64,000 nucleotides of DNA from Octopus sinensis (GCF_006345805.1 NC_042999.1:160084001-160148000), one strand, 5' to 3'. Shown: positions 37,210 to 62,709, numbered from the stretch's first letter. Notes: generated from the letters alone by a model not told the origin. Made by a program: numbers and translations.

Positions 37210-37260
<51 letters not shown>

Positions 37261-37380: not shown

Positions 37381-37387
37381 ATTTATA

Positions 37388-40869: not shown

Positions 40870-41041
40870 ATGGGATTATTGACTGATCCACGGCAGAGAC
40901 GACGGTTTGTTCGTATAATTTCACACTACAATAACCGTCTCTGTGCCTTGTTTTATATCTCTGGACTAATCTGGTTTTTCGGATTAGCTTACATCCATCT
41001 TAATGCAGGAACATACTTTTCTGAAAATGCTTTATTACCTG
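40870..41041 (+). CDS. GPAA1: GPI transamidase component GPAA1, coding exon 1
   Basis: Acceptor ttctttcag ends 40863, ATG at 40870. Encodes MGLLTDPRQRRRFVRIISHYNNRLCALFYISGLIWFFGLAYIHLNAGTYFSENALLP, which matches the recalled GPAA1 N-terminus (MGLLSDP..., TYxSENA). Donor G|gtaag, phase 1. Confidence 0.95.
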
Positions 41042-41189
41042 GTAAGCTTTCCAATTGCTGATCATCATCATCATCGTTATCATTTTCGTTCAGTGTCTAT
41101 TTGTGTCTGTGTTTTTCCCACCACTTGACAACTGGTGCTGGTGTGTTTATAACTTAGTGGTTTGGCAAAAGTGACTGATAGGATATATA

Positions 41190-41417
41190 TATTTCTTTAC
41201 TACCCACAAGGGGCTAAACACAGAGGGGACAAACAAGGACAGACAAAGGGATTAAGTCGATTACATCGACCCCAGTGCGTAACTGGTACTTAATTTATCG
41301 ACCCCGAAAGGATGAAAGGCAAAGTCGACCTCGGCGGAATTTGAACTCGGAACGTAATGACAGATGAAATACGGCTACGAATTTCGCCCAGCGTGCTAAC
41401 GTTTCTGCCAGCTCGCC
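41190..41417 (-). mobile_element. SINE family B nested in a family A-like SINE (GPAA1 intron 1)
   Basis: Family B sequence splits an A-like 3' half that spans about 41090-41550. Confidence 0.82.
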
Positions 41418-41615
41418 ATACCAGGCTTAAAAGAAAATAAGTACTGGGGGGGGGGGGGGGAATCAATGCATTCAACTAAAAATTCCTCAAGGCGGTGCCC
41501 CAGCATGGCTGCAGTCTAATGACTGAAACAAGTAAAAGATAAAAGATAAAACATTTCAAATATTATACTTGAAATAGATTGTAATTATAATTTGCATTTT
41601 TCTATTCTTTTACAG

Positions 41616-41700
41616 GTTTAGTAGAAGGCAACTTTTATTCTGATGCTGATGTCAAGTTTTACAAGAATGAAATAAAAAAAGCTATGGACAAAGACAAAAG
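41616..41700 (+). CDS. GPAA1: GPAA1 coding exon 2
   Basis: tttacag| (G)LVEGNFYSDADVKFYKNEIKKAMDKDK(S) |gtgggt; 85 nt, phase 1 to 2, in frame with both neighbours. Confidence 0.88.
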
Positions 41701-41837
41701 GTGGGTTTAAAAATGCCTTTTTTTTAATAATATACTTACAATATTCTGGTTATCATACCTGCTGAATAAAAGTGATAATTCTTAGAAAATAGCACACCAC
41801 ATGATGTTTCTTTTAAAGTTGTAGTGTTGTTTAGATT

Positions 41838-42250
41838 ACTCTTTACTCTTTTACTTGTTTCAGTCATTTTGACTGCAGCCATGCTGGAGCACCGCCTTTA
41901 GTCGAGCAAATCAACCCCGGGACTTATTCTTTGTAAGCCCAGTACTTATTGTATCGGTCTCTTTTGCCGAACCGCTAAGTGACGGGAAAGTAAACATACC
42001 AGCATCGGTTGTCAAGCAATGCTAGGGGGACAAACACAGACACACAAACATATACACACACATACATACATATATATACATATATACGACAGGCTTCTTT
42101 CAGTTTCTGTCTACCAAATCCACTCACAAGGCTTTGGTCAGCCCGAGGCTATAGCAGAAGACACTTGCCCAAGATGCCACACAGTGGGACTGAACCCGGA
42201 ACCATGTGGTTGGTAAGCAAGCTACTTACCACACAGCCACTCCTACGCCT
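41838..42250 (-). mobile_element. SINE family A
   Basis: Full-length family A layout. Confidence 0.87.
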
Positions 42251-42274
42251 ATAGATTGAAGAGGATTACACTAT

Positions 42275-42835
42275 ATCATCATCATCATCATCATCATCGT
42301 TTAACGTCCGCTTTCCATGCTAGCATGGGTTGGACGGTGCAACTGGGGTCTGGGAAGCCAGAAGGCTGCACCAAGCCCAGTCTGATCTGGCAATGTTTCT
42401 ACGGCTGGATGCCCTTCCTAACACCAACCACTCCGTGAGTGTAGTGGGTGCTTTTTACGTGCCACCGGTACAGGTGCCAGACGGAGCTGGCAAACGGCCA
42501 CGATAGGATGATGCTTTTTACATGCCACCGGCACGGAGGCGAGGCGAGGCTGGCAACGGCCACGATCGGATGGTGCTTTTTACGTGCCACCGGCACGGAA
42601 GCCAGTCGGGGCGGAACTGGCAACGGTCACGTTCGGATGGTTCTCTTATGTGCCACCGGCACTGGTATCACAGCTGCTATTTCCATTGATGTTGATCGAT
42701 TTTGATTTTGATTTTCACTTGCCTCAACAGGTCTTCACAAGTAGAGTTTTGTGTCCCAAGAAGAAAAGGTATGCATAAGTGGACTGAGGCCATGGGTTAT
42801 GGACTCACTTGTCCTGCCGGGTCTTCTCACATCTT
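42275..42835 (-). mobile_element. Family C RTE-type 3' end with tandem repeats and further unique upstream sequence
   Basis: (CAT)n tail, family C core and three repeat units. Confidence 0.8.
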
Positions 42836-42854
42836 CAATGAATATGATACTGAA

Positions 42855-43175
42855 GGTGTGTGGCTTAGTGGTTAGGGTATTTGGCTCTCAATCATAAGGT
42901 TTTGAGTTCGACTCCGAACAACGTGTTGTCCTTGAGCAAGACACTTTATTTCACGTTGCTCCTGTCCACTCAGCTGGCGAAAATGAGTAGTACCTGTATC
43001 TTAAAAGGGCCCACCTTGTTACACTCTGTGTCATGCTGAATCTTCCTGGGAGCTTCGTTAAGGGTACATGTGTCTGTGGAGTGGTCAGCCACTTACTTGT
43101 TAATTTCATGAGTAAGCTGTTCCATTGATCAGATTAACTGGAACCCTCATCATCCTAACTGATGGAGTGCCAGTT
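42855..43175 (+). mobile_element. tRNA-derived SINE family D
   Basis: A-box TGGCTTAGTGG, B-box GAGTTCGACTCC, CCTTGAGCAAGACACTT core; related copy at about 58405-58745. Confidence 0.7.
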
Positions 43176-43345
43176 ACTGCTAGGTGCAGGCGTGGCTATA
43201 TGGTAAGAAGTTTGTCTCCCAATCTCAAGGTCTTGGATTCAGTGTCTCCTACTATAGCTTTGAGCCAATGAAACCCTTGTGAGTGGATTTGGTAAATGGA
43301 AACTGAAAGGAGCCCATCACATATATATATATATATGTGTGTGTG

Positions 43346-43389
<44 letters not shown>

Positions 43390-43393
<4 letters not shown>

Positions 43394-43795
43394 CCAGCCT
43401 CGCCTGGCCCCGTGTTGGTGACACGTAAAAGCACCATCCGTTTCGTGGCCGTTTGCCAGCTCTGTCTGGCCCCCGTGTTGGTGGCACGTAAAAGCACCAT
43501 CCGTTCGTGTCCGTTGCCAGCCTTGCCTGGCCCCCGTGCCGGTGACACATAAAAACACCATCCGTTCATGGCCGTTTGCCAGCTCTGTCTGGCATCTGTG
43601 CGAGTGGCACGTAAAAAGCACCCACTACACTCACGGAGTGGTTGGCGTTAGGAAGGGGCATCCAGCCGTAGAAACACTGCCAGATCTGACTGGGCCTGAT
43701 GAAGCCTTCCAGCTTCACAGACCCCAGTTGAACCGTCCAACACATGCTAGCATGGAGAACGGACGCTAAATGATGATGATGATGATGATGATGAT
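43390..43795 (+). mobile_element. Family C RTE-type 3' end with tandem repeats
   Basis: About four ggcacgtaaaagcaccatccg-type units and a (GAT)n tail. Confidence 0.8.
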
Positions 43796-44867
43796 ATATA
43801 TATATGTGTGTGTGTGTGTGTGTATATATTATTGAACACACATATACAGTGTACAGGCTCTGCTTGTTTGCTGGTAGGCTGTAATTCGACACAGTGGAGA
43901 TGACTGTCAAAGTGCCGGATGTTAAATCATCTGAAATCATAGACAGACAAAACAACTCACCCCAAGTCCCGTTTAGGAGCAATGGGCATCGATGTTTTGC
44001 CATTTTTGTGGCTTATCAACATCATGTACCTGAACCGAACTGGAGATGAAGTGAATCGCCTGTCCATGTCCATATCTACAATGGTGTAAAAACCATCTGC
44101 TGGTATGCCCAGATGATGCCTACATAGTAATAAACCTAAATATGATTCAGAAGCAGTGCTAGTGTTGTTCAGTAAAATTGTATTATATACATATTAGAGG
44201 GAAACCACTATGTGGAACATGGTTTACGGAATATGGTAATAGTGAAACATGTATGCGAATAATCCATATTTTTATTGCTTTTTCTTTTGTCTTGCTCAAT
44301 TACGTTTTGGTTGTTTTGCTAAATTTTTGTTGAGAACATTTCTTAGTAGTAAGATCATAGCGGATCTATATCTAGCATAAGAGTGTCTCTAATATATATA
44401 TATAATATACATAATGTATATTATTTGTATGTGTGTTACTGTCTGGTTATTGGAAATATTACTTTATTTGGAAATAGGTGAGGGTTGGCAACAAGAAGGG
44501 TGTAACAGAAACAGCTACGTATCAAGACATTAGTATATGTATGCAAGAGAAACTGTTCCACTTGCTTTAATATAAGATTCAAATTGAGGATGAACACTAA
44601 GCTTTAAAAAAGCTGTTTATGAGGAGGTGGGAAGTACTTGAAAAAATGTATGAATGATATTAGTTAAGTTAATGTATTCAATGCTTGGAGAATCAAGAAA
44701 CTCATTTGTTGAAGAGAAAATTGTAATAGAATAGAAGACTAATAGAAATCTCATGAGAGACAACTCTGGATGTGTTTTGGACTATATTGACTCCTTCACT
44801 GAACCATTATTTACTATAGTTGTTCAAGTAGTGATAAAAAAATCTACCAAGTATCTATAGAAGTTTG

Positions 44868-45272
44868 GGATCTTTTCGGTTTGAATGGCAGTTTTTAACA
44901 TAATTTCTAGGTAATTAAAAGATTTTAAACTTCGTATACTGGTAGAATGTGTTTATAAAACATCTTTTTCTCTTGGCTTTATTGAGAAAATTCTATAGTT
45001 TGTAAGATATTAGTTGTTTTTTTTTCTTCAATTTCTGCAATTTTAACCAATCAATTGCGTCTATTGAGGTAAAAAACATTCTGTGCCATATGAATAAGTC
45101 CCTTGTTTAAGAAACAGATTGGGTTTATTTATATTTGTGAAGAAAAAAAAATACCCTAACCCTAACCCTAAAACAGATTGAAATGCAATAGATCGATACT
45201 AGGGTCATAATTATGGGTGACAATTTCATATGACACCGCTAGAAAAAACTGCCGTTCAAACCGAAAAGATCC
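44868..45272. mobile_element. MITE family M1
   Basis: TIRs; 8-bp TSD gaagtttg/gaagattg. Confidence 0.88.
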
Positions 45273-46298
45273 GAAGATTGTACATGGTGGACATAGGAAA
45301 ATAGAATTTCACTCATCATTTTAAATCTGAATTTTGAATGTATTGAAGATGCAGATATGACTTTGTAGTTAAGAAATTTGCTTCTCAATCACATTGTTTC
45401 AGGTTCAGTCCTACTGCATGACACCTTAGGCAAGTGTCTTCTACTATAGCTCTGTGCCAATCAAAGTCTTAGAATGAATTTGATATAAGAAATCAAAAAA
45501 GCCTCTGTGTGTGTGTGTGTGTATTTACATTTGCACTCCATAGAAGACATTACTTAAGGTGTTACACCGTGGGACTGAACCTAGAATTATGTATTTGGGG
45601 AAGCAAACTTCTTACAACACAACCCCACCTGCGCTTCTTTGCCCTACCTGGGCCTATTGATTCATGTTCTAAATTAATATATACCTAAACATGTTGCAAT
45701 ACTTTAGAATTGGGGTAAAGTGAATCCTAAGGTTTTGTTGTTTAGCTCCAGGTTGGCATTTGATAAACAGATCCTTGTTCAAAAGTATTCCATCCATGAG
45801 TATCCCATTACTTTTGTATTTCTTTCCTTTTAACCCTTTAGTGTTTGCATTATTCTGCCAAAGTTTATCCTTTTTTATCAACATTACCTTGAACTAATCA
45901 GGCATTATCTTGGAGCTATGAGATTTTGATGAGGTAGCTGATAATTTTTAAAACAATATTGTAGGGTTGGTGTGAGAGACTAGATCTGGCCAGTTTGAAC
46001 ATAAAACAGGCAGAATACTTTTGGCCAGATATGGCCGGTTTAAATGCTAAAGGGTTAAAGATGGTAGGATGTAATTCAAGGGTGATTTGGCAGCTATTTT
46101 TTGCAGATTGAAAGACCATGTAAAAACTTCATGGAAATGGGATTTGAAAACAAGAACTTTCTTGATACATTTTGCTTAATTTAGCATGTTCCTTTTCTCA
46201 TAACTAAAAAAAAAATTATCAGATGGTTAAGGCTCTCAGTAATGTACCATTCTTTTCTTCACTCACCATCTTACTCTTTTTTTAAAAATATTTTTTAG

Positions 46299-46404
46299 TC
46301 TGCTGTTACGTGACTGGCTATTTTCAAAGTTTGAAGAACTTGGCTTAGAAGTTTATTTCCAGAATTATTCTGTTCAGTATCCTTTACAGTTGCTTGGTGA
46401 CCAG
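46299..46404 (+). CDS. GPAA1: GPAA1 coding exon 3
   Basis: ttttttag| LLLRDWLFSKFEELGLEVYFQNYSVQYPLQLLGDQ |gtaatt; contains the W..LGLEVYxQ motif; 106 nt, phase 2 to 0. Confidence 0.93.
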
Positions 46405-46454
46405 GTAATTATAAGATTTATATTTATTTATTGACTTTTTCACTATTTATTTCC

Positions 46455-46703
46455 TTGGCTGGCTTCTGTACCGGTGGCACGTTAAAAGCTTCAACCGATC
46501 ATGGCCGATGCCGGACCCCCCCTGGCACCTGTGCAGGTGGCACGTAAAAAGCACCCACTACACTCACGGAGTGGTTGGCGTTAGGAAGGGTATCCAGCTG
46601 TAGAAACTCTGCCAGATCAGACTGGAGCCTGGTGCAGCCCCTGGCTTCCCAGACCCCGGTCGAACCGTCCAACCCGTGCTAGCGCGGAAAACGGACGTTA
46701 AAC

Positions 46704-46737
<34 letters not shown>
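46455..46737 (+). mobile_element. Family C RTE-type 3' end, about 50 nt downstream of exon 3
   Basis: CpG-intact core and a long (GAT)n tail. Confidence 0.82.
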
Positions 46738-47231
46738 TTTATGTTGTCTGAAATGAATTCATTCAAGTCTTACTACACAGTTGAGTTGTAAATCTTATAT
46801 TGTAAAAGAGAAGATGATCTCCAACTGACTGTCTGTAGTAACATCTGTGTAGTGAGAAGGAAGAGGAGGAGAAAAAGTTGTTATTGAACAAAAAATACAG
46901 TGAGAGAGAGCAAGAGAGAGAGAATGTGTGAAAGAGAGACAGAATGCTTGGAACGAAGTGGATTGTACTAAAATATACTTAATGGCTAGGTGGTAGTATT
47001 TAACTAAGCAACAGATGGAGTTTGTAACCCAAGAACAGGAATGGCTTCATTGAAAGGCTTCCATACAGTTTCCTTCTACCAAAAAGTATCTTGGTAATGA
47101 AGTAGAGAGTACATCAATCTCATAATTAAAACTTACTGAATAAACTGAAAATAGCTCGTTACTTATGTATAATAATGAGTTTTGTGCAAATATCCTTCTT
47201 ATATTTTCTATATAAATGTGTTTAATTTCAG

Positions 47232-47400
47232 AAAGTCCCTGGTCAAAATGTTTATGCTATTTTAAGGGCTCCTCGTGCTTCAAGTACAGAAGCAGTGGTT
47301 CTTTCTGTCCCTATACGATCTAAGAATATGATCTCTAAAACACTGACTGATACCAGTGGGGGAATCGCTCTCATGCTCGCTTTAACCAAGTTCTTCAAAA
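47232..47400 (+). CDS. GPAA1: GPAA1 coding exon 4
   Basis: atttcag| KVPGQNVYAILRAPRASSTEAVVLSVP...GGIALMLALTKFFK |gtaagt; contains the NVYxILRAPRAxSTE motif; 169 nt, phase 0 to 1. Confidence 0.96.
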
Positions 47401-47520
47401 GTAAGTTAACCTTTGAGTAAATCAGTTGATATCAAAATATGTATATTTGCTAATAAACTTATTGTTCAAGTTTTGAATTTGCTATTTCCACTTGCATAAC
47501 TTGCAAATGGAACACTCTGT

Positions 47521-47826
47521 GGAGGCACATGGCCTAGTGGTTAGAGCAGCGGACTCATGGTCGAGGGATCGTGAGTTCGAATCTCAGATCGGGTGATGTG
47601 TGTGTTTATGAGCGAAAACACCTAAGCTCCACGCGGCTCTGGCATAAGGTAATGGCGAACTTCTGCTGACTCTTTCGCCACAACTTTCTCTCACTCTTTC
47701 CTCCTGCATCTTGCAGCTTACCTGCGACGGACCGGCGTCCCGTCCAGGTGGGGAACCTATATGCCAAGAAACTAAGAAACTAGCCCTTATGAGCCAGGCA
47801 TGGCTCAAGAAGGAACAAACAAAAAA
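47521..47826 (+). mobile_element. Full-length tRNA-derived SINE with Meta/V-SINE-like domain
   Basis: A-box TGGCCTAGTGG, B-box GAGTTCGAATCT, CTGCGACGGACCGGCGTCCCGTCCAGG domain, A-rich tail, 16-bp TSD AAATGGAACACTCTGT. Confidence 0.85.
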
Positions 47827-47984
47827 AAATGGAACACTCTGTAATTAGAAGTGAATGTCAGTGTTTATGAGATTAATCAGTAATTTATTCATCTTCAAAG
47901 GATCTCTTATTACCAAATGTCTGTTCTCTGAAGAAAACACTTTTTCTCTCATAAACACTACAGCTCCACCGCCTCCTCATCATT

Positions 47985-48345
47985 TAGTGTCCATTTTCCA
48001 TGCTAGCATGGGTTAGATGGTCTGACGGGAACTGGTAAGCTGGAGAGCTTCTACCTGGCTCCAGTCTGGTTTGGCTTGGTTGCTATGGCTGGATGCCCTT
48101 CATAACACCAACTACTCCACAGAGTGTACTGGGTGCCTTTTACATAATCACCAACACAAGTGTCTTTTATGTGTCACCAGCACTGGCCACAACTAATGAT
48201 TTCATTTAGCTTGACGTGTCTTCTCATGCTGAACAAATTATCAAGTCTCAGTCACTTGTCATCACCTCCATGAGACTCAACATCTGAAGATCATATTTCA
48301 CTACCTTATCCCTCATCTTCCTGGGTCTACCTCTTCCACAGGTTC
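47985..48345 (-). mobile_element. Diverged RTE LINE 3' end (family C-like)
   Basis: The minus strand encodes a GRGRPRK-type RTE C-terminal remnant adjoining the family C 3' UTR. Confidence 0.7.
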
Positions 48346-48423
48346 CAAAAATGGTCGAATGGATATTAGGGTTCCAGCTCATACGATTTGAGTTTTAGTG
48401 CATTGCAAGTATTTTATTATGGA

Positions 48424-49411
48424 CTAGGAGTATCGCCCGGCATTGCTCGGGTTTGTAAGGGAAATAACTATATAAGCATTTTTAGAGAGTTATAGCCAAA
48501 AAATAGCAAAAACATGCATTAAAAATGGAAAAAAAATTATGGTAAATTTTTTTAAAAATCGTTGACTCATCGTAGACATTTTTAGAGAGTTACTTCCCTT
48601 ATATAATAGTGAAAAAAATGCATTAAAATGGAAAAAATGATGGTAAATTTTTTTAAAATCATTGACTCATCCTAGACATTTTTAGAGAGTTACTTCCCTT
48701 ATATAATAGCGAAAAAATGCATTAAAATGGAAAAAAATGATGGTAAATTTTTTTAAAAATCGTTGACTCATCGTAGACATTTTTAGAGAGTTACTTCCCT
48801 TATATAATAGCGAAAAAATGCATTAAAATGGAAAAAATGATGGTAAATTTTTTTTTAAATCGTAGACTCATCGTAGACGCGCGCTAATACCCAGAAGGGC
48901 TCGATATGAATCATGACTATAAGATACCCGGTTTTGGTTAAACTGCACCACAAAATGTGGGAGTAGTTAGGAATCTAAATCGTAGGAGACAGAAACACAA
49001 CTTCACTTTTATATATAAAGACTAGCAGTATCGCCCGGCGTTGCTCGGGTTTGTAAGGGAAATAACTATAGAAGCATTTTTAGAGAGTTATAGCAAAAAA
49101 AATGCATTCAAAATGGAAAAAATATGATGGTAAATTTTTTTTTAAATTGTTGACTCATCGTAGACATTTTTAGAGAGTTACTTCCCTTATATAATAGTGA
49201 AAAAATGCATTAAAATGGAAAAAATGATGGTAAATTTTTTTAAAAATCGTTGACTCATTGTAGACGCATGCTAATACCCAGAAGGGCTCGATATGAATCA
49301 CGACTATAAGATACCCAGTTTTGGTTAAACTGCACCGCAAAATGTGGGAGTAGTTAGGAATCTAAATCGTAGGAGACAGACAGCACACAACCTCACTTTT
49401 ATATATAAAGA
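48424..49411 (-). mobile_element. Head-to-tail Helitron H1 dimer
   Basis: Copies 49022-49411 and 48424-49021 abut as CTAG|TC, with internal tandem units of about 99 bp. Confidence 0.88.
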
Positions 49412-49919
49412 TATGGACTGTACACTTAAACTGTCTGTGCTTCAGTTTACCAAAGTGTAGAATGATTGTCTAAGATAGACTTACATCTCTGATAGGGGAA
49501 GATTTATCTCTTGTTAATCTGTACCACAAGATTCAAAATACTTGCCAATACAATCCCTCTTGGATTATATTCTCTTTGAAGTATTAATTTTCTCAAAGAT
49601 TTAATCTCTTGCTTAGACTAACAACAGTACTGGCTTTTTAGTGGAATTTACTTTAGTGCAAGTATTCAGACTAGGTTTCCCTTTTTACTTCCAGTGATGT
49701 CGGAGGTCACTGGCTCTGACAGATGTTTTCTTTCCTGACTAACCCATAAAAGAAAAAAACAAAAAGCAAAACAAAATAAAAATTGTTTTTAAATCTTTTA
49801 ATTACTTTTTACTTATATACTTGTTTCGGTTATTTGACTGCAGTCATGATGGGTCACTGCCTCGAAAGATTTAAGTCATTTGTATCAACATCTGTACCTA
49901 ATTTTTAGTTTAGTACTTT

Positions 49920-50165
49920 TTACATGCCGCGTAAAAAGCAGCTGTGTTGGCACCATGAAATCGCCCATGCTGGCACCACATAAAAGCACCTGTGTTGAGG
50001 CCACATAAAAAGCACCCAGCACACCCTGCAAAGTGGATGGTGTTAGGAAGGGCATCCAGCTGTAGAGATGAAGCTGAAACAGACTGAAACCTGGTGCAGC
50101 TCTCCTGCTTATTTTCCATGCAAACATGGGAAATGAACATTAAACAATGATGATGATGATGATGA
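49920..50165 (+). mobile_element. Diverged family C 3' end
   Basis: aggaagggcatccagctgtag core and (GAT)n tail. Confidence 0.7.
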
Positions 50166-50231
50166 TTTATATTTATCACACAGCTAAATTACTGAACATA
50201 AATACAGATACATACAAACATACAAGTACAT

Positions 50232-50403
50232 AGACGCAGGAGTGGCTGTGTGGCAAGTAGCTTGCTAACCAACCACATGGTTCCGGGTTCAGTCCCACTG
50301 CGTGGCATCTTGGGCAAGTGTCTTCTGCTATAGCCCCGGGCCGACCAATGCCTTGTGAGTGGATTTGGTAGACGGAAACTGAAAGAAGCCCGTCGTATAT
50401 ATG

Positions 50404-50464
<61 letters not shown>

Positions 50465-50682
50465 ATGCGTGTGTGTGTTTGTCCCCCTAGCATTGCTTGA
50501 CAACCGATGCTGGTGTGTGTTTACGTCCCCGTCACTTAGCGGTTCGGCAAAAGAGACCGATAGAATAAGTACTGGGCTTACAAAATAATAAGTCCCGGGG
50601 TCGATTTGCTCGACTAAAGGCGGTGCTCCAGCATGGCCGCAGTCAAATGACTGAAACAAGTAAAAGAGTAAAAGAGTAAGAG
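50232..50682 (+). mobile_element. SINE family A
   Basis: Full length, CpG-intact. Confidence 0.88.
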
Positions 50683-50982
50683 TAGACACATGTACTGTTT
50701 CCATCTACCACTTTCACTCACAAGACATTGGGGCAGGTAGAGGCTATATTAGGAAACATTTCTCCAAAGTGCAGTATAGTGGAACTGAACTCAGGACCAC
50801 ATGATTGCAAGTGATCGTAACACACAGCCGAGCTTAAGCTTAATTAAAAACATTTTTTAACATAACTTTTTTTTCTCCCCCTCTTGATTTGTAAAATGAT
50901 TTTTGTTCAAAAGGCGGTACTCCAGCATGGCCACAGTCATTGGACTGAAGCATATAAGAGAATAAGTTCAACGAAGCATATA

Positions 50983-51150
50983 TATATTTCTTTACTACCC
51001 ACAAGGGGCTAAACACAGAGAGGACAAACAAGGACAGACAAACGGATTAAGTCGACTATATCGACCCAGTACGTAACTGGTACTTTATTTATTGACCCTG
51101 AAAGGATGAAAGACAAAGTCGACCGGCGGAATTTGAACTCGGAACGTAAT
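50983..51150 (-). mobile_element. SINE family B, 5'-truncated
   Basis: Family B core and tail. Confidence 0.8.
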
Positions 51151-51415
51151 TGAACTGATAGGAATGGTAGGCGTTTAGTTTGGTTCTGTAGCATTTATGT
51201 CCACAATTCTTTCCTGGCATCATACACTTATTACTTAACTTCATTATAATAATGATTGTTGTCATGAATTGTTGTTACAACAAACTCAATGACACTTTGT
51301 CATCAAATCTGTTTATACCATACATTTCAGTATATATTTATTTATTTATTTATTTATTTATTTTATATTGAACACCTGTTGATGAGTTCTTAAGATTGAT
51401 CTTTAACTGTTTCAG

Positions 51416-51520
51416 AACACACCTTTTGGGCCAAGGATATCATTTTCTTGCTGACGCAGCATGAACACATAGGCATTGAAGCATGGCTTGATGGTTATCA
51501 CCAAGTACAGTCTTCAAAAT
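51416..51520 (+). CDS. GPAA1: GPAA1 coding exon 5
   Basis: gtttcag| [34 protein letters not shown] |gtaagt; contains the WAKDIxFL and EAWLxxYH motifs; 105 nt, phase 1 to 1. Confidence 0.96.
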
Positions 51521-51697
51521 GTAAGTGCACAACTTGTATTTGATTATAAATTTGTTCTATATTCAAGATTATGTGGAGTGAATGAAACCAGTGTTCATTA
51601 TTATTAAGTGAATGATAATGATATGTTGTTCCTTTTGATGGAATACATTTTCATTGAAATGAAAGATTCAGTAAATATAATCAGTAAATATAATCAT

Positions 51698-52099
51698 AGG
51701 CGCAGGAGTGGTTGTGTGATAAGTAGCTTGCTAACCAACCTCATGGTTCCGGGTTCAGTCCCACTGCGTGGCACCTTGGGCAAGTGTCTTCTGCTATAGC
51801 CTCAGGCTGACCAAAGCCTTGTGAATGGTTATGGTAGACGGAAACTGAAAGAAGCCTGTCGTATATATGTATATATATATATGTGTGTATGTGTGTTTGT
51901 GTTTGTACCCCTAGCATTGCTTGACAACCAATACTGGTGTGTTTACGTCCCCATCACTTAGCGGTTCGGCAAAAGAGACTGATAGAATAAGTACTGGGCT
52001 TACAAAGAATAAGTCCCGGGGTCGATTTGCTCGACTAAAAGGTGGTGCTCCAGCATGGCCGCAGTCAAATGACTGAAACAAGTAAAAGAGTAAAAGAGT
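51698..52099 (+). mobile_element. SINE family A
   Basis: Full length; convergent with the next copy. Confidence 0.88.
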
Positions 52100-52135
52100 C
52101 CATTTAGCTGATAATGATAACAAGTCCTAGACTTA

Positions 52136-52518
52136 TACTCTTTTACTCGTTTCAGTCATTTGACTGCGGCCATGCTGGAGCACCGCCTTTAATCGAGCAA
52201 CTCGACCCCGGGACTTATTCTTTGTAAGCCCAGTACTTATTCTATCGGTCTCTTTTTGCCAAACCGCTAGGTGACGGGGACATAAACACACCAGCATCGG
52301 TTGTCAAGCAATGCTAGGGGGACAAACACAGATACACAAACATATACATATATACGACGGGCTTCTTTCAGTTTCCGTCTACCAAATCCATTCACAAGGC
52401 TTTGGTTGGCCCGAGGCTATAGTAGGAGACACTTGCCCAAGGTGCCACGCAGTGGGACTGAACCCGGAGCCATGTGGTTGGTAAACAAGCTACTTACCAC
52501 ACAGCCACTCCTGCGCCT
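52136..52518 (-). mobile_element. SINE family A
   Basis: Full length; inverted relative to the 51698 copy. Confidence 0.88.
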
Positions 52519-52559
52519 AATGGGTCAAGTCCATTACTATTTTACTTGTTTATTTGTGA

Positions 52560-53098
52560 CTAGCTGAGGTATCACTTATAAGGCAATTGCATCAGCCCCA
52601 GTTCTTACTTCTAAGTTTGGTATTTATTTTCATCATCTCTATCGAACTGCTTAGTTTCAGGACATAAATAATACAAGTACAGCCTCTCACACACACATGT
52701 ATGACAGGTTTCTGACTGTTTCTACCTGCAAAATTTAAAATAATAATGAAATTATTGTATACAGTGCTCAGGTGCACCACAACTTGTCAGAGTACATGCA
52801 GTAATGTACAAATGTCTGGAAAGCGAACAGTGCATGAGTCAGATACATGCTTGTGTGTTTATGGAGGGGAGAAAATCAGGTGTAGTGTTGGCGAATCTCA
52901 GAAAGCATGGAAGTTTTGAAGGATGCAGTGCTCCGACAACTAACAACTGATGCCGGCAGTTTGTTCCATGCTTCAGCAACTCAGCATGAAAATATGTTTC
53001 CTGAAGTCATGGGAGCTGTGCTGTTTTCTGACTTTGTAAATATGTCCACGGGTGTTAGATGGGTGGAGTTTGAAAAGGTGCTCAGAGTTTGGCATTGA
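52560..53098 (-). mobile_element. CR1-clade LINE 3' end
   Basis: Minus-strand remnant VAEAWNKLPASVVSCRSTASFKTSM plus 3' UTR. Confidence 0.72.
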
Positions 53099-53192
53099 TC
53101 AACCCAAGGCTGTAATAGAAGACACTTGCCCAAGATGTTGCATAGGGGAAACTATGTAATTATTAAGCAAATTCTTAATCAAATGTTTGCCT

Positions 53193-53587
53193 CTATTCTT
53201 TTATTCTTTTACATGTTTCAGTCATTTGACTGCGGCCATGCTGGAGCACCACCTTTAGTCAAGCAACTCGACCCCGGGACTTATTCTTTTGTAAGCCCAG
53301 TACTTATTCTATCGGTCTCTTTTGCCGAACCGCTAAGTGACGGGGACATAAACACCCCAGCATCAGTTGTCAAGCAATGCTAGGGAGACAAACACACACA
53401 CGCATATACATATATACATATATACGACAAGCTTCTTTCAGTTTCTGTCTACCAAATCCACTCACAAGGCTTTGGTCGGCCCCAGGCTATAGTAGAAGAC
53501 ACTTGCCCAAGATGCCACGCAGTGGACTGAACCCGGAACCATGTGGTTGGTAAACAAGCTACTTACCACACAGCCACTCCTGCGCCT
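53193..53587 (-). mobile_element. SINE family A
   Basis: Full length. Confidence 0.87.
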
Positions 53588-53862
53588 ATGTTTAAGAAAA
53601 TTGTATTACTGGGTTGGGAATTTTTTCATACAATAATGTGAACTCAAAATATTTATTGAAATGTAATTCTGAATATGTGTTCAAATATCTAAATCTATGT
53701 TTGGGTTTACATACATAAGTGTGTGTATATAGCTGGCAGGTTGACTTCTAATAGACATTGTGCAACAATATATTTTATAGATTCATAATAATGAACAATA
53801 TTCATTTACCCCTGACACTCATTAATTTTTCAATCTGTAATAAAATTTGTATTTTTTTTTAG

Positions 53863-54059
53863 ATGTTTTTCCAGGAACTTTGTGGGGTCGAAGTGGGTCA
53901 ATTCAAGCTGCTCTTAATTTAGAGATCCCTCTTGAGAAAGTAGCTTATTATAACATCAAGATGGAAGGCCTCAATGGTCAATTGCCAAACCTTGATCTGG
54001 TCAATCTAGTTGTGCGTCTTTGCCGGCGTGAAGGGGACTCTGTGAGGCTGCACAACCAG
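53863..54059 (+). CDS. GPAA1: GPAA1 coding exon 6
   Basis: ttttttag| VFPGTLWGRSGSIQAALNLE...EGLNGQLPNLDLVN...RLHNQ |gtatct; contains the hallmark EGLNGQLPNLDL motif; 197 nt, phase 1 to 0. Confidence 0.97.
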
Positions 54060-54248
54060 GTATCTTGAAATTCTTCATTCATATTTTGTTCAGTTTCTAT
54101 TTAAAATAAATTTTATTAAAATTATTATTATCTACCCCTTTAGTACTTCAGCAATTAATCTCATCATTGTGTTTCTATTTTCACTGATCTTCTGCTGATA
54201 TATAAATCCATTGATGAATATAAACTCCAGGCCTTTTTTCCCAATATA

Positions 54249-54475
54249 TATATTTCCTTACTACTCACAAGCCCCATACAGTGGGGACAAACAAGGACAG
54301 ACAAAGCGATTAAGTCGATTCCATCGACCCCAGTGCGTAACTGGTACTTAATTTATCGACCCTGAAAGGATGAAAGACAAAGTCAACCTTGGCGGAATTT
54401 GAACTCAAAACCTAACGGCAGACGAATTACGACTTCGCATTTCGCCCGGCGTGCTACCGTTTCTGCCAGCTCGCC
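54249..54475 (-). mobile_element. SINE family B with 18-bp TSD
   Basis: TSD GCCTTTTTTCCCAATATA (54231-54248 / 54476-54493); the empty site is present in the duplicate at about 59042. Confidence 0.9.
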
Positions 54476-54860
54476 GCCTTTTTTCCCAATATAGTTTCAA
54501 TGCTGTTATTGACCATACCACAACCTTATGGGATAAAAATAACAAACATTAGAAACTTACTTATAGACACAAAACTTCTTAATCTGAAACCTATGCAAAA
54601 TATCTGTCTTTCTGTCTGTCTTTAATTAATTTATTAATTAATTAGAAAATAGCCTAGTGTAAATAGAAATACAAAAGATAAAGTTAATGCTGTGGAAGAC
54701 CCACATTTTGTAGCTCATCCTAAAAACTAAGCATGTCACATGTGTTATCTTGAAGAAGCCTGTACATGAATCTTTTTAATGTCTGGAAACTAGAGAATAA
54801 AATTTGTTGCACAGTTTTTGACAGGGGGAGATTTCAATCCACTGGTCACCCCGAAACATA

Positions 54861-55261
54861 TCTTTATATATAAAAGTGAGGTTGTGTGCTGTCTGTCTCC
54901 TACGATTTAGATTCCTAACTACTCCCACATTTTGCGGTGCAGTTTAACCAAAACCGGGTATCTTATAGTCGTTATTCATATCGAGCCCTTCTGGGTATTA
55001 GCGCGCGTCTACGATGAGTCTATGATTTAAAAAAAAATTTACCTTCAATTTTTCCCATTTTTAATGCATTTTTGGCATATATAAGGGAAGTAACTCTCTA
55101 AAAATTTATTATTAAATCTCAGAACGTAAAAAGCTACAGTAACACCGCCCCCCCCCCTTGTGGTTAGCCATATTAAGATGGCTATTATACTTTACATCTC
55201 TAAAAATGCTTATATAGTTATTTCCCTTACAAACCCGAGCAACGCTGGGCGATACTGCTAG
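54861..55261 (+). mobile_element. Non-autonomous Helitron H1
   Basis: A|TCTTTATATATAAAA start, CCCGAGCAACGCTGGG hairpin, CTAG|T end. Confidence 0.85.
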
Positions 55262-55612
55262 TTGAATATAATATTTCTTTTTATGGTAAACTGAATTCAA
55301 TCATATGATTAATTCATTAATCTATTTAATCATATATTACACCATACACCATATAATATAATCTAGTCTTGCTATGAAAATTGCTTTGGCTTAACGCCCA
55401 AATTATGAGAGGGTTTTATCAGGAAGTAGATTATCAAAATTTCAAATCTTCTTAGATCCTCCTGTTGTACTCAAGCCAGGTATCTATAAATTGTCTAAAC
55501 CTTAATAAAAAGAGCATATGAAACAGTATATTGAACCTGACAGCATAGGAAGACAAAGTATGTTTACATAGACTAAGTATATTAATGATTATGTTCAGAC
55601 GCAGATTATGTT

Positions 55613-56103
<491 letters not shown>

Positions 56104-56439
56104 ACTAAATATATTAATGGCACTGTACAAATGACTATAGAATTTCTATATTCTTTGTCAAGATTTCAAGTGCTACAAACTTTACTAATCTGTTCTTCGG
56201 AATAGTCAAAAAAAAAAAAATAGTTAAAAAGGAAAAAAATGACCCTGTTATCTCTGGAATAGTCCGTGCTGGCTAAAAAGGAAGTTAATATCATTTGTGA
56301 GATATGCTTATTTTTCAGGTAAGTTTAGAAATAAATATGGAGGGGGAATAAAAGCAGTGTTAGTTAATGACTGACATTATTTTAATGGTTTGGCCATTAA
56401 AAAGTTGACTAGAAATATTTAGTGAGAGTTTTTTTTGAT

Positions 56440-56810
56440 GATGGCAATCCCTCAAGGCTGAGGATGATGGTCTTCGCGCAAATTTACTGGTGACTCCGTA
56501 GGTGACCGATAAGACCAATTCTTGCTTGAAAAGATCAGTCGCAGTGCGGACATCTAGTGCCGGAAGGGAGAGTCGCATGTGGTTGTTGTTGGTGCTCCTT
56601 CCGTCGTCGTCTTTTAGCCTCCAGCTCTGCCGACCTTTTCGACTCGAAAGTCGCCGTTCCCTCATGGATGGTGGTTTTCCAGAGTGGTCTGTTTTTTGCC
56701 GTTTCCTCCCAGTTGGTGACGTTGATGTCACACTTTTTGAGGTTCGTTTTCAGGGAGTCCTTGTAGCGTTTCTTCTGGCCTCCTTTTGTACACTTGCCGT
56801 CTTTGAGTGA
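56440..56810 (-). mobile_element. RTE (BovB-like) LINE 3' end
   Basis: GGQKKRYKDSLKTNLK..WEETAKNRPLWK..CPHC zinc-finger-like C-terminus. Confidence 0.85.
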
Positions 56811-56896
56811 GAGTAATACATTAGTCAATAACTATTTTTAATTTGTTTGGCAAATATTCTTTCTTTGTTGAATCTCCATAGATTTAATCTTGTAAT

Positions 56897-57308
56897 GGAT
56901 TTTTCGGTTTGAACGGCAGTTTTTTCTAGCGGTGTCATATGAAATTGTCACCCACAATTATGACCCTAGTATCGATCTATTGCATTTCAATCTATTTTAG
57001 GGTTAGGGGTGGGGGGAAGGGTATCCTTTTTTCTTCACAAATGTAAATAAACCCAATCTGTTTCTTAAATGAGGGACATATTCATACGGCACAGAATGTT
57101 TTTTTTACCTCAATAGATGTCATTGATTGGTTGAAATTGCAGAAATTGAAGAAAAAAAACAACAAATATCTTACAAACTATAGAATTTTCTCAATAAATC
57201 CAAGAGAAAAAGATGTTTTATAAACACATTCTACCAGTATACGAAGTTTAAAACTTTTTAGTTACCTAGAAATTATGTTAAAAACTGCTGTTCAAACCGA
57301 AAAGGTCC
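56897..57308. mobile_element. MITE family M1 just upstream of GPAA1 exon 7
   Basis: TIRs, perfect 8-bp TSD CTTGTAAT; ends 26 nt before the exon. Confidence 0.9.
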
Positions 57309-57334
57309 CTTGTAATTTTCTTTACTGTTCACAG

Positions 57335-57534
57335 TATGACTATTATGATCCGGATTCACTAAATGGATTCAAACATTCGTTACTGACGATGCTGCGTATG
57401 ATGAAAACTCAAGCATCTGGATCTCCTTCTGGCAACCATGGCCTGTTTCATCGCTACCATATCGAAGCTGTCACTCTTCAAGGTGTCTCACGAGCATTTG
57501 GGCAGAAAACATCAGATTTAATGGTAACTGGTCG
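57335..57534 (+). CDS. GPAA1: GPAA1 coding exon 7
   Basis: ttcacag| YDYYDPDSLNGFKHSLLTML...QASGSPSGNHGLFHRYHIEAVTLQG...DLMVTG(R) |gtaagt; 200 nt, phase 0 to 2. Confidence 0.96.
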
Positions 57535-57984
57535 GTAAGTATTTTTATTAAATCATCAGCCTCATTCATTTTTTTTCCATGGTTGAATTTTTATGTTGAG
57601 AGGCCTGCAATGTTGATCTATTCGAATTGTCTCTATTCTTTGCCAATGTTATTTCAATTTCAATTTCAAAATAGATTTAACAGCCTTATTCATAATTTTC
57701 TTTCACCCACCTGCTTCTAGTTCATTATTCTCATGTCTACTTTTCCATTGTGACACAAGTTACATAAGACTTAGTGAGATGGTGTTTTTGATCAGGTGCT
57801 CCTTCCTGATGCCAACCTTTTTAGGCGATACTTGTTCAAAAACCTGGATTCAAACAGTTGCATGAAATCATGTCACTTTTTACCACACTTTAGTTGCGTA
57901 ACAACAATTCTCAACATTTGGGTCGGTGGGGACAAACACTCTTTTGGCCCTCACATTCTAAATATCAGGCATGCATCCGAACGT

Positions 57985-58325
57985 GGCTGTAGCCAGTACC
58001 GCATCGACTGGCCTCCGTGCTGTGAGCACGTAACAAACACCATCCGATCGTGGCCGTTCGCCAGCCTCATCTGGCACCTGTGTCGGTGGCACATAAAAAA
58101 CACCATCCGTTTGCCAGCTCCGTCTGGCACCTGTGTCGGTGGCACATAAAATCACCCACTACACTCTCGGAGTGGTTGGCGTTAGGAAGGGCATCCAGCT
58201 GTAGAAACACTGCCAGATCTGACTGGCCTGGTGCAGCCTTCGGGCTCCCCAGACCCCAGTTGAACCGTCCAACCCATGCTAGCATGGAAAGCGGACGTTA
58301 AATGATGATGATGATGATGATGATG
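57985..58325 (+). mobile_element. Family C RTE-type 3' end with tandem repeats
   Basis: Core, repeat units and (GAT)n tail. Confidence 0.8.
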
Positions 58326-58988
58326 AAACAGGAGCAACTATCTCCCTCTTGCTATGCCTCTGCCTTGCTTTTGTATATTCTCATCATGTTTGTCTTGTAT
58401 GCATTTGAAGGTGCATGGCTGTGGTTAGAGCATCGGGCTTATAATCATGAGGTTGTGAGTTTGATTCCTGGTCCAGGCTGCGTGTTGTGTTCTTGAGCAA
58501 GACACTTTATTTCACATTGCTCCAGTTCACTCAGCTATAGAAATGAAAGGCAACGTCATTGGTGTCATGCTGTGTTGGCCTTTCCTTTTCCCTTGGATAA
58601 CATCGGTGGTGTGGAGAGGCGAGGCTGGTATGCATGGGCAACTGTTGGTCTTCGATAAAAACAACCTTGCCTAGACTCGTGCCTTGGAGGGGTACTTTCT
58701 AGGTGCAATCTCATGGTCATTCATGACCAAAGACAGTCTCTACCCTTACTCTTTACTCTTTATTTGATGAGAGTACATATATTTGATAGATGCAAGTGTG
58801 GCTGTGTAGTTAAGAAGCTTGTTTTCCTAACCATATGGTTCCAGGTTCAGTCCCACTGCATGGCATCTTGGGCAAGTGTCTTCTACTACAACTCTGATTA
58901 GGCCAACAGAAACTGAGAAAAGCCCATTGTGTGTGTATGTGTGTATGACTTTCTTTGTTTTAATCCAAAATGGAGATAAACACCGATG

Positions 58989-59304
58989 TTTTCACTGATC
59001 TTCTGCTGATATATAAATCCATTGATGAATATAAACCCCAGGCCTTTTTTCCCAATATAGTTTCAATGCTGTTATTGACTATACCACAACCTTATGGGAT
59101 AAAAATAACAAACATTAGAAACTTACTTATAGACACAAAACTTCTTAATCTGAAACCTATGCAAAATATCTGTCTTTCTGTCTGTCTTTAATTAATTTAT
59201 TAATTAATTAGAAAATAGCCTAATACAAAAGATAAAGTTAATGCTGTGGAAGACCCACATTTTGTAGCTCATCCTAAAAACTAAGCATGTCACATGTGTT
59301 ATCT
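58989..59304 (+). repeat. Dispersed duplicate of intronic segment 54178-54750
   Basis: Near-identical over about 316 nt, lacking the SINE and a 12-nt segment. Confidence 0.92.
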
Positions 59305-59431
59305 AGAAGATAATTTCTGAGGTATTCCTTAACATGAAACCAAGCCTTAATACACAATTAAAGAATCGTTATCCACCAATATGGTGTTGAGTGCTCATTC
59401 TCATCATTGGATGTTTACATATATATATATA

Positions 59432-59662
59432 TATTTCTTTACTACCCACAAGGGGCTAAACGCAGAGGGGACAAACGAGGACAGACAAACGGATTAAGTC
59501 GATTATATCGACCCCAGTGCGTAACTGGTACTTAATTTATCGACCCTGAAAGGATGAAAGGCAAAGTCGACCACGGCGGAATTTGAACCCAGAATGTAAC
59601 GGCAGACGAAATACGGCTACGCATTTCGCCCGGCGTGCTAACGTTTCTGCCAGCTTGCCGCC
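59432..59662 (-). mobile_element. SINE family B
   Basis: Full length. Confidence 0.85.
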
Positions 59663-60080
59663 TTCCTTACATATATATATATGTATGTGTACATACATGT
59701 TTGCGTGTATGCTTGTTCTAACCTTATGCAATGGTTGTAAATGAACACCATGAAAAGAATGTTCTCTTTTAGTCTTACATGAAATAACATGCCATGGGGA
59801 AATGTTGTTTTGCATGGAAACAGATGAAGGTTGGCAACAGAAAGGGTATCTCGCTTTGAAAATGTACTTCAATGAATTCTATCTGAGACATGCAAACATG
59901 GAAAATCATCATCATCATCATCGTTTAACGTCCGCTTTCCATGCTAGCATGGGTTGGCAGCTGTTAAAATGAATAAGATGTATTTGAGGAAAATAACTAT
60001 ATTTGTAGGGTGAAAACCCCTCCTGAATGTTGAAACCTTTACTGCCATGAGTTGCTATTGTTTTTTGTTTATTTTTACAG

Positions 60081-60234
60081 GATTGTGGAAGGCATATTCC
60101 GTAGTCTCAACAACCTTCTTGAGAGATTCCATCAATCCTTCTTCTTTTACTTAATGCCTGCTACCAACCGGTATATCTCCATCGGATTGTATATGCCACC
60201 TTTCAGTTTAATGACAGCTGCTGGTTTGATCAAA
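60081..60234 (+). CDS. GPAA1: GPAA1 coding exon 8
   Basis: tttacag| [26 protein letters not shown]...[10 protein letters not shown]...GLIK, followed directly by the U12 5' splice site ATATCCTTT at 60235; 154 nt, phase 2 to 0. Confidence 0.95.
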
Positions 60235-62436
60235 ATATCCTTTTCACCACCCTTTATTCAAAAGTGACAAAAAACTTAGATAAAACATAAGTTTTTAATA
60301 TCAGGTTAATTATCATCACTAACAGTTTTGTCTGTTTTTCTACTGTTTTTCTACACAGAATGGATTTGATTCTTCTTTTAAATTTTTTCTGTTAACCTCT
60401 TCATTACTTTTAACAATATGTTTTCAAGCTTTCCACAATGCTCCTCCAAATTCTATTATCATCCCTTTAGAGACAAAGCTTACTTAATGCTTCTGTACAA
60501 GCTACAAAAACGAAAATACTTCTTTAAAATTTGAATCTTAGTTGACATATAAAAGTACATATATTTGTGAAGAGAATGATCTTGTATACCTCTTTTTCTA
60601 ATATGTTAGGCCAATTTATTTTTCATATATTTTTGGCTCTCACAACATATCTTGTTATTTAACATTTTTATGTTTTATTGACATTAGTCTGAAGAATAGG
60701 TACTCTTTCTACTTGAGTTCTTTGTGACCGAGTTAAGGGGATTGTAGCTAAGATTTGTATTAAGATGTAAAATTTTCAATTGAAAAGTAAACATCATCAT
60801 CCATCATTTCGAATCTGGGTTTTGTCCTCGTCAACAGAGGTGACTGGATCTACCTCAATGCCATAGCAACTGCCCTCACACCATCTTGCTCCCTTCTCAA
60901 GCCAACCCTCCCAATCTCCTCCTCCACCTGTCCCCTCCACATTTTCCTCAGTCTATCTCGTTTTCGCTGTCCATTTACCTCAAAGTCTAGCACCCTCTTC
61001 AGAACATGCTCCTTGCCCCTCCTCAACACATGCCCATATCACTGCACTCCATTCACCCTTGTCAGCTGTTACACTGATTCCTCCAACCCCAGCATCCCCA
61101 TCAAGTCTTCAGTCCCCTTATCAAACAGCCTCACACCAAACATTTCTCTCACCATTGCTCTCTCAGTCCTTCTCAAAGTTGCCATCTCTCTCTCTCTCTC
61201 TCCCTCCCTCAAACACCATGTCTCACTCCCATACAGCATTGCAGCTCTCACACAACTCCTGTAGACTTTTCCTTTCGTCTTCAATGAGAACCTTTTCCCC
61301 TATAACAATGCTCCACATTCCCTGAACTTCACCCAGCCAAGTCTCTCTCTTGCTGTCACAGCTGCTTCACACCCACCACTTACATCCACCCTATCTCCCA
61401 AATAACAAAACCCTCTCACCATCTCCACCTCATCACATAGTATTCCCACTGATTTCGCCAGACCTCCACCTCCTTTCTCACATCTACAAACAAACTCTCT
61501 CACCAGTCTTGGGATCACCTTCTTCATTTTTGTACATCTACCATGAATCCATTTCTCACATCTCGTACATTTGCCATTACCCTCCTCCCACATACACCAC
61601 ATGGATCCACCTTACTCACTAACACTTCTCCTCCCACCCCACTCACCATCACCTTTGTCTTCCCGAGGTTTACCTTCAAGCCCTTGCTTTCAAATGCCTT
61701 CTTCCATTTCCAAAACTTTTCCCTCAATCCCTACATCGTCTCACTCATCAGAACAATATCATCTGTATACAGTATCTCCATTATCAATCCCTCTCTTGCA
61801 CTCTCCGTCAACACATCAACCACTTTTGCAAACAACATTGGAGACAACTCAGATCCCTGATGCACACCAACTTTAACTACAAACTCCTCTGACAGCTCTG
61901 ATACAATTCTCACTTTTGTCTCTACCCCCTCATACAAACTGGTCACTGCTCTCACCATTACTTCTAGTACACCTCTCTTCCTCAATGCCCATTCAATCAT
62001 ATTTCTTGGAACCCTATCAAATCCCTTCTCCAGATCAATGAAGCATATGTACAACTCCTTCCCATTATCTCGGTATTCCTCCTGTAATCTTCTTACAATG
62101 AACACTGCATCTATTGTCCCCGTTCCTGGCATAAAAGCAAATTGCATCTCATCCACATCTCCTTTGGCAGGATTCAAGTAGGCACAGGTTACAAGGAAGA
62201 AGCTAAGAGTTTTCTTTTTTTGTATGTTGAAGAGAGTTATTTGTACTTTCTTCTCCACTTGATTATGGTAAACATGATCACTGGAAGGCCATTTTTATTC
62301 AGATGAACATCATCATCATGATCATGATAATCCTACTCATCATTGATGTGATTTTTTTTTTTTTGTCTTCTATCATAATTTGCTCAAGTATACATAAGAA
62401 TGATTTAAAAGATACGTCCACCTTAACACATTTCAT
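60235..62436 (+). other. GPAA1: U12-type (minor spliceosome) intron of GPAA1, apparent AT-AT termini
   Basis: 5' site ATATCCTTT (60235-60243). Branch site CCACCTTAAC ends 62427, and the in-frame exon start follows ...TTTCAT at 62436. Vertebrate GPAA1 is known to carry an AT-AC minor intron at the equivalent K|A junction. Confidence 0.85.
60792..62190 (-). mobile_element. 5'-truncated RTE LINE inside the U12 intron
   Basis: QFAFMPGTGTIDAVF, FIDLEKGFDRVPR, GVHQGSELSP, LYTDD and AMLYGSETW motifs with frameshifts; (GAT)n tail at 60792. Confidence 0.9.
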
Positions 62437-62709
62437 GCCATTTCTTTGTGGATTGGTTCTGAAAAGCCAAAAGACAAAAATGAAAAGAAGCCACAAAAAA
62501 GTGATTTAAATTCTTCCAAGCTAGAAAAAGATGAAAAAGAACCTGAAACAGAGAAACAAGAGAAAGAAGTAGAGAAAGAAGACAATGAAGTGAGTCAGTC
62601 AAAGAAAGAGATTTCTTGTGAGAAGAAAGAAGAAGATCCACTGGAAAAATTGTCTAAAGATGTAAATGATATTGAAGATGATGACAGTTTGAAAAACGAC
62701 CCAGATGAG
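62437..62709 (+). CDS. GPAA1: GPAA1 coding exon 9 (gene continues beyond window)
   Basis: AISLWIGSEKPKDKNEKK...KNDPDE |gtaagt; AISLW aligns with recalled vertebrate ALELW after the minor intron; 273 nt, phase 0 to 0. Confidence 0.85.

Follow-up and report, generated by a model that had tools for sequence, protein, structure and literature searches.

One of the subunits of the GPI transamidase is GPAA1 (Gaa1), whose gene in mammals carries a minor intron whose ends differ between species. Sheth et al. (2006; PMC1557818) listed six AT-AT U12 introns in human and six in mouse, and in Table 3 of their study, which covers subtype switches, Gpaa1 is AT-AC in human and AT-AT in mouse. The minor intron of mouse Gpaa1 is 176 nt long (PMC8848931). 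The CENATAC study gives the human GPAA1 intron as chr8:144084876-144085042, AT_AC, with the sequence ...CTCAAG/ATATCCTCTG...GTCCTTGATTGGGCTAC/GCTCTG, and retention of the human intron rose significantly on depletion of CENATAC, a minor-spliceosome factor.

Introns with AT-AN ends ("A-type") are an established class of minor introns (PMC8280824). Among the conserved minor introns of animals, Larue et al. (2023; PMC10639083) counted 1.12% AT-AA (823), 0.95% AT-AT (701) and 0.43% GT-AT (319), AT-AT being the second commonest non-canonical type in animals. The species in which this pan-eukaryotic survey finds conserved minor introns include Octopus sinensis.

Here, we analysed a 64-kb stretch of O. 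sinensis DNA (hereafter the window), in which intron 8 of GPAA1 (60235-62436) is, with high confidence, a U12-type, A-type minor intron with AT-AT ends. An earlier note on this DNA had proposed such an ancient intron, and the splice signals, the orthologous introns and the RefSeq junction all bear it out.

The GPAA1 gene and its surroundings

The 5′ two-thirds of O. sinensis GPAA1 occupy the plus strand of the window from 40870 to the window end, and the gene continues past the 3′ end. The features of the model are as follows.

40870..62709, plus strand: 5′ part of GPAA1, nine coding exons, model built from the window
40870-41041, 41616-41700, 46299-46404, 47232-47400 and 51416-51520, plus strand: exons 1-5
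53863-54059, 57335-57534, 60081-60234 and 62437-62709, plus strand: exons 6-9
60081..60234, plus strand: exon 8, ending in phase 0 after K396, conserved in all homologues
62437..62709, plus strand: exon 9 (AISLWIGSEKPKDKNEKK...DPDE), with a lysine-/glutamate-rich loop, then a GT donor (gtaagt) at 62710
61734..62258, minus strand: non-LTR retroelement reverse-transcriptase fragment in intron 8 (Pfam RVT_1, E = 7e-18, motif YTDD)

The 487-aa product of the nine exons was 100% identical, over its full length, to RefSeq XP_029633709.1 (O. sinensis GPAA1 isoform X2). The next-best matches were from O. vulgaris (96%), O. bimaculoides (95%) and Argonauta hians (84%). The product contains the Gaa1 domain (Pfam PF04114, E = 1e-121), and this domain together with the orthology to annotated GPAA1 identifies the gene. 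Introns 1-7 are GT...AG and intron 9 begins with gtaagt; intron 8 is the sole exception among the introns in the window.

RefSeq isoforms X1 and X2 start with MTERKTN... and MQTN..., ahead of the MGLLTDP start of the nine-exon model (window 40858-40872), which implies one or more extra upstream 5′ exons. In the numbering of these isoforms, the AT-AT intron would become intron 9 and K396 would become K400 or K403. At the other end, the RefSeq isoforms of O. bimaculoides (3/3, 497-504 aa) terminate in ...DPDEVSSKNCFG, with the intron 9 donor read through to a stop. The equivalent at window 62710-62736 is gtaagtagcaggaaccattttgggtaa (VSSRNHFG and a stop). These C-termini represent either a retained-intron isoform or a truncated model.

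Much of intron 8 is made up of the C-rich stretch of the retroelement, from about 60790 to 62160/62260, with a GC skew of −0.49. The reverse-transcriptase fragment is also found in the O. vulgaris intron. The retroelement is carried along as cargo, outside the splicing signals.

Other repeats were observed in the window. Long imperfect (TA)n microsatellites lie at 795-1255, 2332-4821, 5004-5429, 24646-25133, 33143-33508 and 37056-37387; the largest is about 2.5 kb, and they account for GC dips to 15-26%. Just upstream of GPAA1 are Mos1/mariner-type transposase remnants at 32005-32981 (plus strand) and 39455-39838 (minus strand), with HTH_48 matches (E = 8e-11 and 8e-18) and a weak partial DDE match; the first copy is frameshifted. 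GPAA1 intron 4 holds a 100-bp tandem repeat at 48477-48878 (four copies, 90% match) and, about 500 bp downstream, a second similar block near 49050-49260. In intron 9, an ORF of 128 aa at 63225-63608 (plus strand) has no Pfam match and looks like the terminal part of a retroelement reading frame. Intron 9 also contains, at 63600-63840, a repeat with many further copies in the window (translations like "...NRISTRL.K...PSMAAV") that is presumably similar to an abundant SINE of octopus. No tRNA was detected when the 64-kb window was scanned, and Pfam queries on two other ORFs of the window gave no match.

Splice signals and junction of intron 8

A U12-type 5′ splice site is the binding site for U11 and U6atac. 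The signals of intron 8 are listed below.

60235..62436, plus strand: intron 8, 2202 nt, AT-AT termini, very probably U12-type (from signals, frame, RefSeq proteins and orthology)
60235..60243, plus strand: U12-type 5′ splice site ATATCCTTT, directly after the K396 codon, once in the window
62421..62427, plus strand: branch-point sequence CCTTAAC, presumed branch A at 62426, 10 nt from branch A to exon
62435..62436, plus strand: 3′ terminal dinucleotide AT, non-canonical, identical in O. vulgaris, AT also in Argonauta

The K396 codon (AAA) is at 60232-60234, and the nine-exon model reproduces this numbering. The sequence ATATCCTTT that follows at the exon end agrees with /RTATCCTT. Near the 3′ end, CCTTAAC agrees with TCCTTAAC, while the upstream TT of the full branch consensus is CA here (CACCTTAAC versus TTCCTTAAC). 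The earlier note had reported both the donor and the branch site, and we recovered them at exactly the same positions. In U12 introns the optimum distance from the branch site to the 3′ splice site is 11-13 nt and a pyrimidine tract is absent (PMC3584512). The 10 nt in O. sinensis are one below this optimum, and the orthologues have 9-15 nt. No polypyrimidine tract precedes the 3′ splice site of intron 8; positions 62392-62420 read acataagaatgatttaaaagatacgtcca, which is purine-rich.

Motif counts were compared with expectation. ATATCCTTT occurs once on the two strands of the 64 kb, where 1.6 occurrences are expected, and for CCTTAAC the tally is seven against an expectation of 7.4. Numbers by themselves carry no significance here; the signal is the placement of the motifs. 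The donor sits exactly at the exon end that bears a U12 intron in other animals, and by our own rough estimate the chance of finding CCTTAAC 8-20 nt before the required in-frame acceptor is <1e-3.

Two look-alikes of U12 donors were seen elsewhere in the gene. One, GTATCCTTT at 46377-46385, lies within coding exon 3 (SVQYPLQ), and the other, ATATCCTT at 47190-47197, lies in intron 3, 42 nt upstream of exon 4. Both look like chance occurrences without a matching branch site.

The reading frame restricts the acceptor. Splicing after 62436 (CAT/GCC) yields ...GLIK/AISLWIGSEK and keeps the frame open through the rest of exon 9. If the intron instead ended with the AC at 62428-62429, only 3 nt past the branch A, the frame would shift and run through ISCHFFVDWF into a stop. 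The CA at 62430 is in frame, yet it is merely 4 nt past the branch A. When every junction 3-25 nt past the branch A is considered, 62436 is the only one that is in frame, at a workable distance and with a penultimate A. The earlier note had thus been right to call the AC unusable and to place the acceptor after 62436, 10 nt from the branch A, where AISLW is restored in frame.

These observations bear on the idea that removal of intron 8 is inefficient or uses multiple 3′ sites, so that AT-AT would be just one product among several and some of the output would be unproductive. In human cells, basal retention is comparatively high for A-type (AT-AN) introns (PMC8280824), and selection of the 3′ site in U12 introns has been described as error-prone (PMC3584512). 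However, the region holds no other in-frame junction with a penultimate A at a workable distance. Moreover, GPAA1 is an essential, single-copy gene, and the 3′ AT is common to Octopus and Argonauta, which argues for adequate function. We consider this idea very unlikely.

Annotated proteins agree with the junction after 62436. GLIK/AISLW is present in all three RefSeq isoforms of O. sinensis (XP_029633708/09/10) and in all three of O. bimaculoides (XP_052822436 to XP_052822439). Homologues without extra residues read K/A(I/V/L)(A/S)(L/M)W; they include the cuttlefish protein P0120, the transcript-derived P0121 and most mollusc, annelid, brachiopod and arthropod proteins. On many invertebrate genomic contigs, prokaryote-style ORFs run from the exon into "...K ISF...", which is ATATCCTTT translated. 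This readthrough indicates that a U12 donor is widely found at exactly that junction. Taken at face value, the six RefSeq proteins and the homologues would fix the junction at 60234/62437, with genomic ends AT...AT that are the same in O. vulgaris.

A U2-type alternative was also considered, in which the real intron is GT-AG at 60264-62411 and 18 residues (10 + YVHLNTFH) are added between K396 and AISLW. This intron is in frame (donor tcaaaa/GTGACA, acceptor tttaaaag/atacgt), and the older O. bimaculoides protein P0118, with its 18-residue insert of 10 + Y(I/V)HLNTFH, corresponds exactly to it. However, the extra residues are missing in every other homologue, including cuttlefish and assembled transcripts, and the O. 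bimaculoides model was later superseded in RefSeq. In Argonauta the counterpart of the extra stretch is unrelated sequence save for the branch motif, although the flanking exons are nearly identical. At three positions, −1, +5 and +6, the GT-AG donor departs from the U1 consensus, and the acceptor is preceded by the purine-rich ACATAAGAATGATTTAAAAG without a pyrimidine tract. Such a model would also leave a perfect U12 donor and a branch site unexplained. It is therefore very improbable, and the U12-type reading is retained.

The terminal T could in principle be an assembly or sequencing error at 62436 in a canonical AT-AC intron, which is the commonest A-type form; one C-to-T difference would be enough. 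In the O. vulgaris assembly GCA_951406725.2, the donor is that of the window, and so is the acceptor, ...ccaccttaacacatttcat/GCCATTTCTTTGTGG. Its intron 8 is 98.6% identical to that of O. sinensis, with 17 base differences and 15 gap columns, whereas the last 85 nt, including CAT/GCC, are identical. Because this independent assembly has the same acceptor, the terminal T is not an assembly slip. In addition, the intron of Argonauta hians, a distant octopod, ends in ...TTTTAT/GCC, and AC was found in none of the examined molluscs. The probability of such an error is thus very small, and the T is taken as genuine.

The orthologous intron across animals

We read the orthologous locus at both intron ends in nine other genomes. 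The intron is in phase 0 in all of them, and in all ten the junction falls after K (or an equivalent residue) and before A-x-x-L-W. Outside the RefSeq-annotated species, the termini were derived from the reading frame and protein homology. The short Logan/ENA contigs L003-L005 end before the acceptor and were left out of the acceptor comparison. This comparison is without a decapodiform, as the cuttlefish (Acanthosepion pharaonis) protein P0120 has no contig on record. Termini, intron length, branch motif and distance from the branch A are given below.

O. sinensis (window): AT-AT, 2202 nt, CCTTAAC, 10 nt after branch A
O. vulgaris: AT-AT, 2217 nt, CCTTAAC, 10 nt after branch A
Argonauta hians: GT-AT (putative), 1544 nt, CCTTAAT, 10 nt after branch A
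Lottia gigantea: AT-AA, 297 nt, CCTTAAC, 10 nt after branch A
Mizuhopecten yessoensis: AT-AA, 1920 nt, CCCTAAC, 11 nt after branch A
ENA contig ERZ25072724 (L001): AT-AA, 369 nt, CCTTAAC, 11 nt after branch A
ENA contig ERZ25070786 (L002): AT-AA, 273 nt, CCTTAAC, 11 nt after branch A
Nymphon striatum (sea spider): AT-AA, 1168 nt, CCTTAAC, 15 nt after branch A
Rattus rattus: AT-AA, 169 nt, CCTTGAC, 10 nt after branch A
Macaca fascicularis: AT-AC, 167 nt, CCTTGAT, 9 nt after branch A

The AA end of L001 has an in-frame AG 3 nt upstream of it. The U12 5′ motif is present at this codon boundary in O. vulgaris, Lottia, Mizuhopecten, Nymphon, rat, macaque and the two ENA contigs. The macaque junction is LGLK/ATATCCTC...CCTTGATTGGGCTAC/ALELW, and the ends of the macaque intron match those of the human GPAA1 intron. 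The octopus intron lies at the same codon boundary as the human U12 intron, and also as those of macaque and rat, which establishes the orthology. The AT-AC minor intron that the earlier note placed at the equivalent vertebrate junction is indeed there in human and macaque.

It had also been suggested that the octopus acceptor drifted from AC to AT. This is probably wrong. In the molluscan comparison, AT was found in O. vulgaris and Argonauta, AA in Lottia and Mizuhopecten, and AC in none. Judging from the sequences compared, the octopod terminal T more likely arose from AA than from AC. A change from AA to AT is simpler because AA is found in Lottia, Mizuhopecten, Nymphon, the two ENA contigs and rat, and AC only in primates. 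The GPAA1 U12 intron is ancient (bilaterian), with a fixed 5′ site, branch site and position and a free last nucleotide (AC/AA/AT). For evolution, it adds a molluscan case to the known readiness of A-type introns to change their last base, and it points to AA rather than AC as the state of this intron in protostomes.

Some genomic ORFs depart from this pattern. P0013, P0021, P0022, P0023, P0028, P0039, P0043 and P0048 start at the equivalent of exon 8 and run uninterrupted across K/A; the U12 intron seems to have been lost in their lineages. P0026 reads K/VSS, which is consistent with a GTATCC donor. In P0077 and P0082 there is instead an intron after ...YISIG.

The intron of Argonauta hians (GCA_054771915.1, L008 18151-19694) starts with GTATCCTTT at the equivalent codon boundary and ends in ...TTCCTTAATGATTTTTAT, with the acceptor ...ttccttaatgatttttat/GCC. 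On this reading it is a putative minor intron with GT-AT ends; annotators placed the acceptor at an in-frame AG, 27 nt upstream of the AT end. Natural changes of the terminal bases at one position might then form a series (gastropod, bivalve and chelicerate AT-AA; Octopus AT-AT; Argonauta GT-AT), a proposal that we regard as doubtful. Were GT-AT splicing in Argonauta real, cephalopods would illustrate how A-type introns can move towards G-type via 3′-T intermediates, a route that would bypass the poorly spliced AT-AG or GT-AC intermediates that are usually assumed. The introns would then also offer matched natural substrates for the pairing of the first and last intron bases in the minor spliceosome.

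The same junction is garbled in several gene models. We rejected an AT-AC pair at 60175-62415, which removes 20 residues conserved in nearly all other homologues examined. The O. vulgaris protein P0117 (L007) corresponds to this false pair, in which the donor falls 60 nt and the acceptor 21 nt before the true site; it loses the 20 residues and gains VHLNTFH. Argonauta P0119, annotated with the AG 27 nt upstream, gains IFFFLNDFY. Models from Lottia, Mya, Pomacea, Nucella, Patella, one from Mizuhopecten and one from macaque read into the intron, and those from Pinctada, Mactra, Batillaria, Elysia marginata and Plakobranchus have deleted residues. The earlier note expected gene predictors to miss the junction, and this is true of several annotations, but the O. 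sinensis RefSeq proteins XP_029633708/09/10 already have it right. For annotation, this is a clean case of a non-canonical minor intron corrupting gene models, with RefSeq correct, and a check for a U12 donor at this position would mend many GPAA1 annotations.

Proposed splicing and comparison with known systems

The steps proposed here follow the established minor-spliceosome pathway, and both the acting spliceosome and its efficiency in octopus are taken from that pathway. The U11/U12 di-snRNP would bind the 5′ site ATATCCTTT and the branch sequence CCTTAAC jointly. U4atac/U6atac.U5 would then enter, and at the 5′ site U11 would give way to U6atac. Position 60235 would next be attacked by the branch A (about 62426). 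The 3′ site may be picked mainly via the short distance from the branch point (10 nt), and not via an AG or a pyrimidine tract, after which exons 8 and 9 would be joined as ...GLIK/AISLW.... Because distance would mainly determine the choice, a terminal T instead of C could be tolerated, and the last base could be C, A or T at the same intron across lineages. Some natural introns have non-canonical termini, and in experiments such termini sustain U12 splicing, though often at lower efficiency (PMC3584512).

GPAA1 output is probably dependent on the minor spliceosome in octopus, as in human cells. The earlier note had linked the AT-AT ends to a sensitivity of GPI anchoring to minor-spliceosome activity. 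In view of the human CENATAC data this sensitivity is plausible, but it would hold for any A-type intron and not for AT-AT specifically; the dependence would follow because the intron is U12-type, not because it ends in AT. The note had likewise spoken of a rare class. AT-AT introns do make up about 1% of the conserved animal minor introns, but they are well documented, and mouse Gpaa1 was already listed as AT-AT.

The closest known systems are the mammalian introns of the same gene. Like the octopus intron, the mouse and the human (NM_003801.3) GPAA1 introns are in phase 0 after the K of G-L-(I)-K and before A-x-x-L-W, and mammalian and octopus introns share ATATCC at the 5′ site and, 9-10 nt before the exon, the branch motif CCTTRAY. 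According to Sheth et al. (2006), mouse Gpaa1 is AT-AT like octopus; the rat sequence is AT-AA. However, the mammalian introns are about 167-176 nt long, with ATATCCTC and CCTTGAY, whereas the octopus intron has 2202 nt, a retroelement fragment, ATATCCTTT and CCTTAAC. The introns of Lottia, Mizuhopecten, Nymphon and the two ENA contigs agree with those of the octopods in position, phase, 5′ motif and branch motif, and differ in ending with AA instead of AT.

The A-type U12 class has been described by Levine and Durbin (2001), Dietrich et al. (2005), Sheth et al. (2006), de Wolf et al. (2021) and Larue et al. (2023). The octopus intron has the traits of this class, namely an AT start, a U12 branch site, a short distance from the branch to the 3′ end, no pyrimidine tract and a non-C end. 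There is no categorical difference between them, and the octopus intron is one more instance of the class. It adds to a known kind, in a gene already known for this variation and with a junction already in RefSeq.
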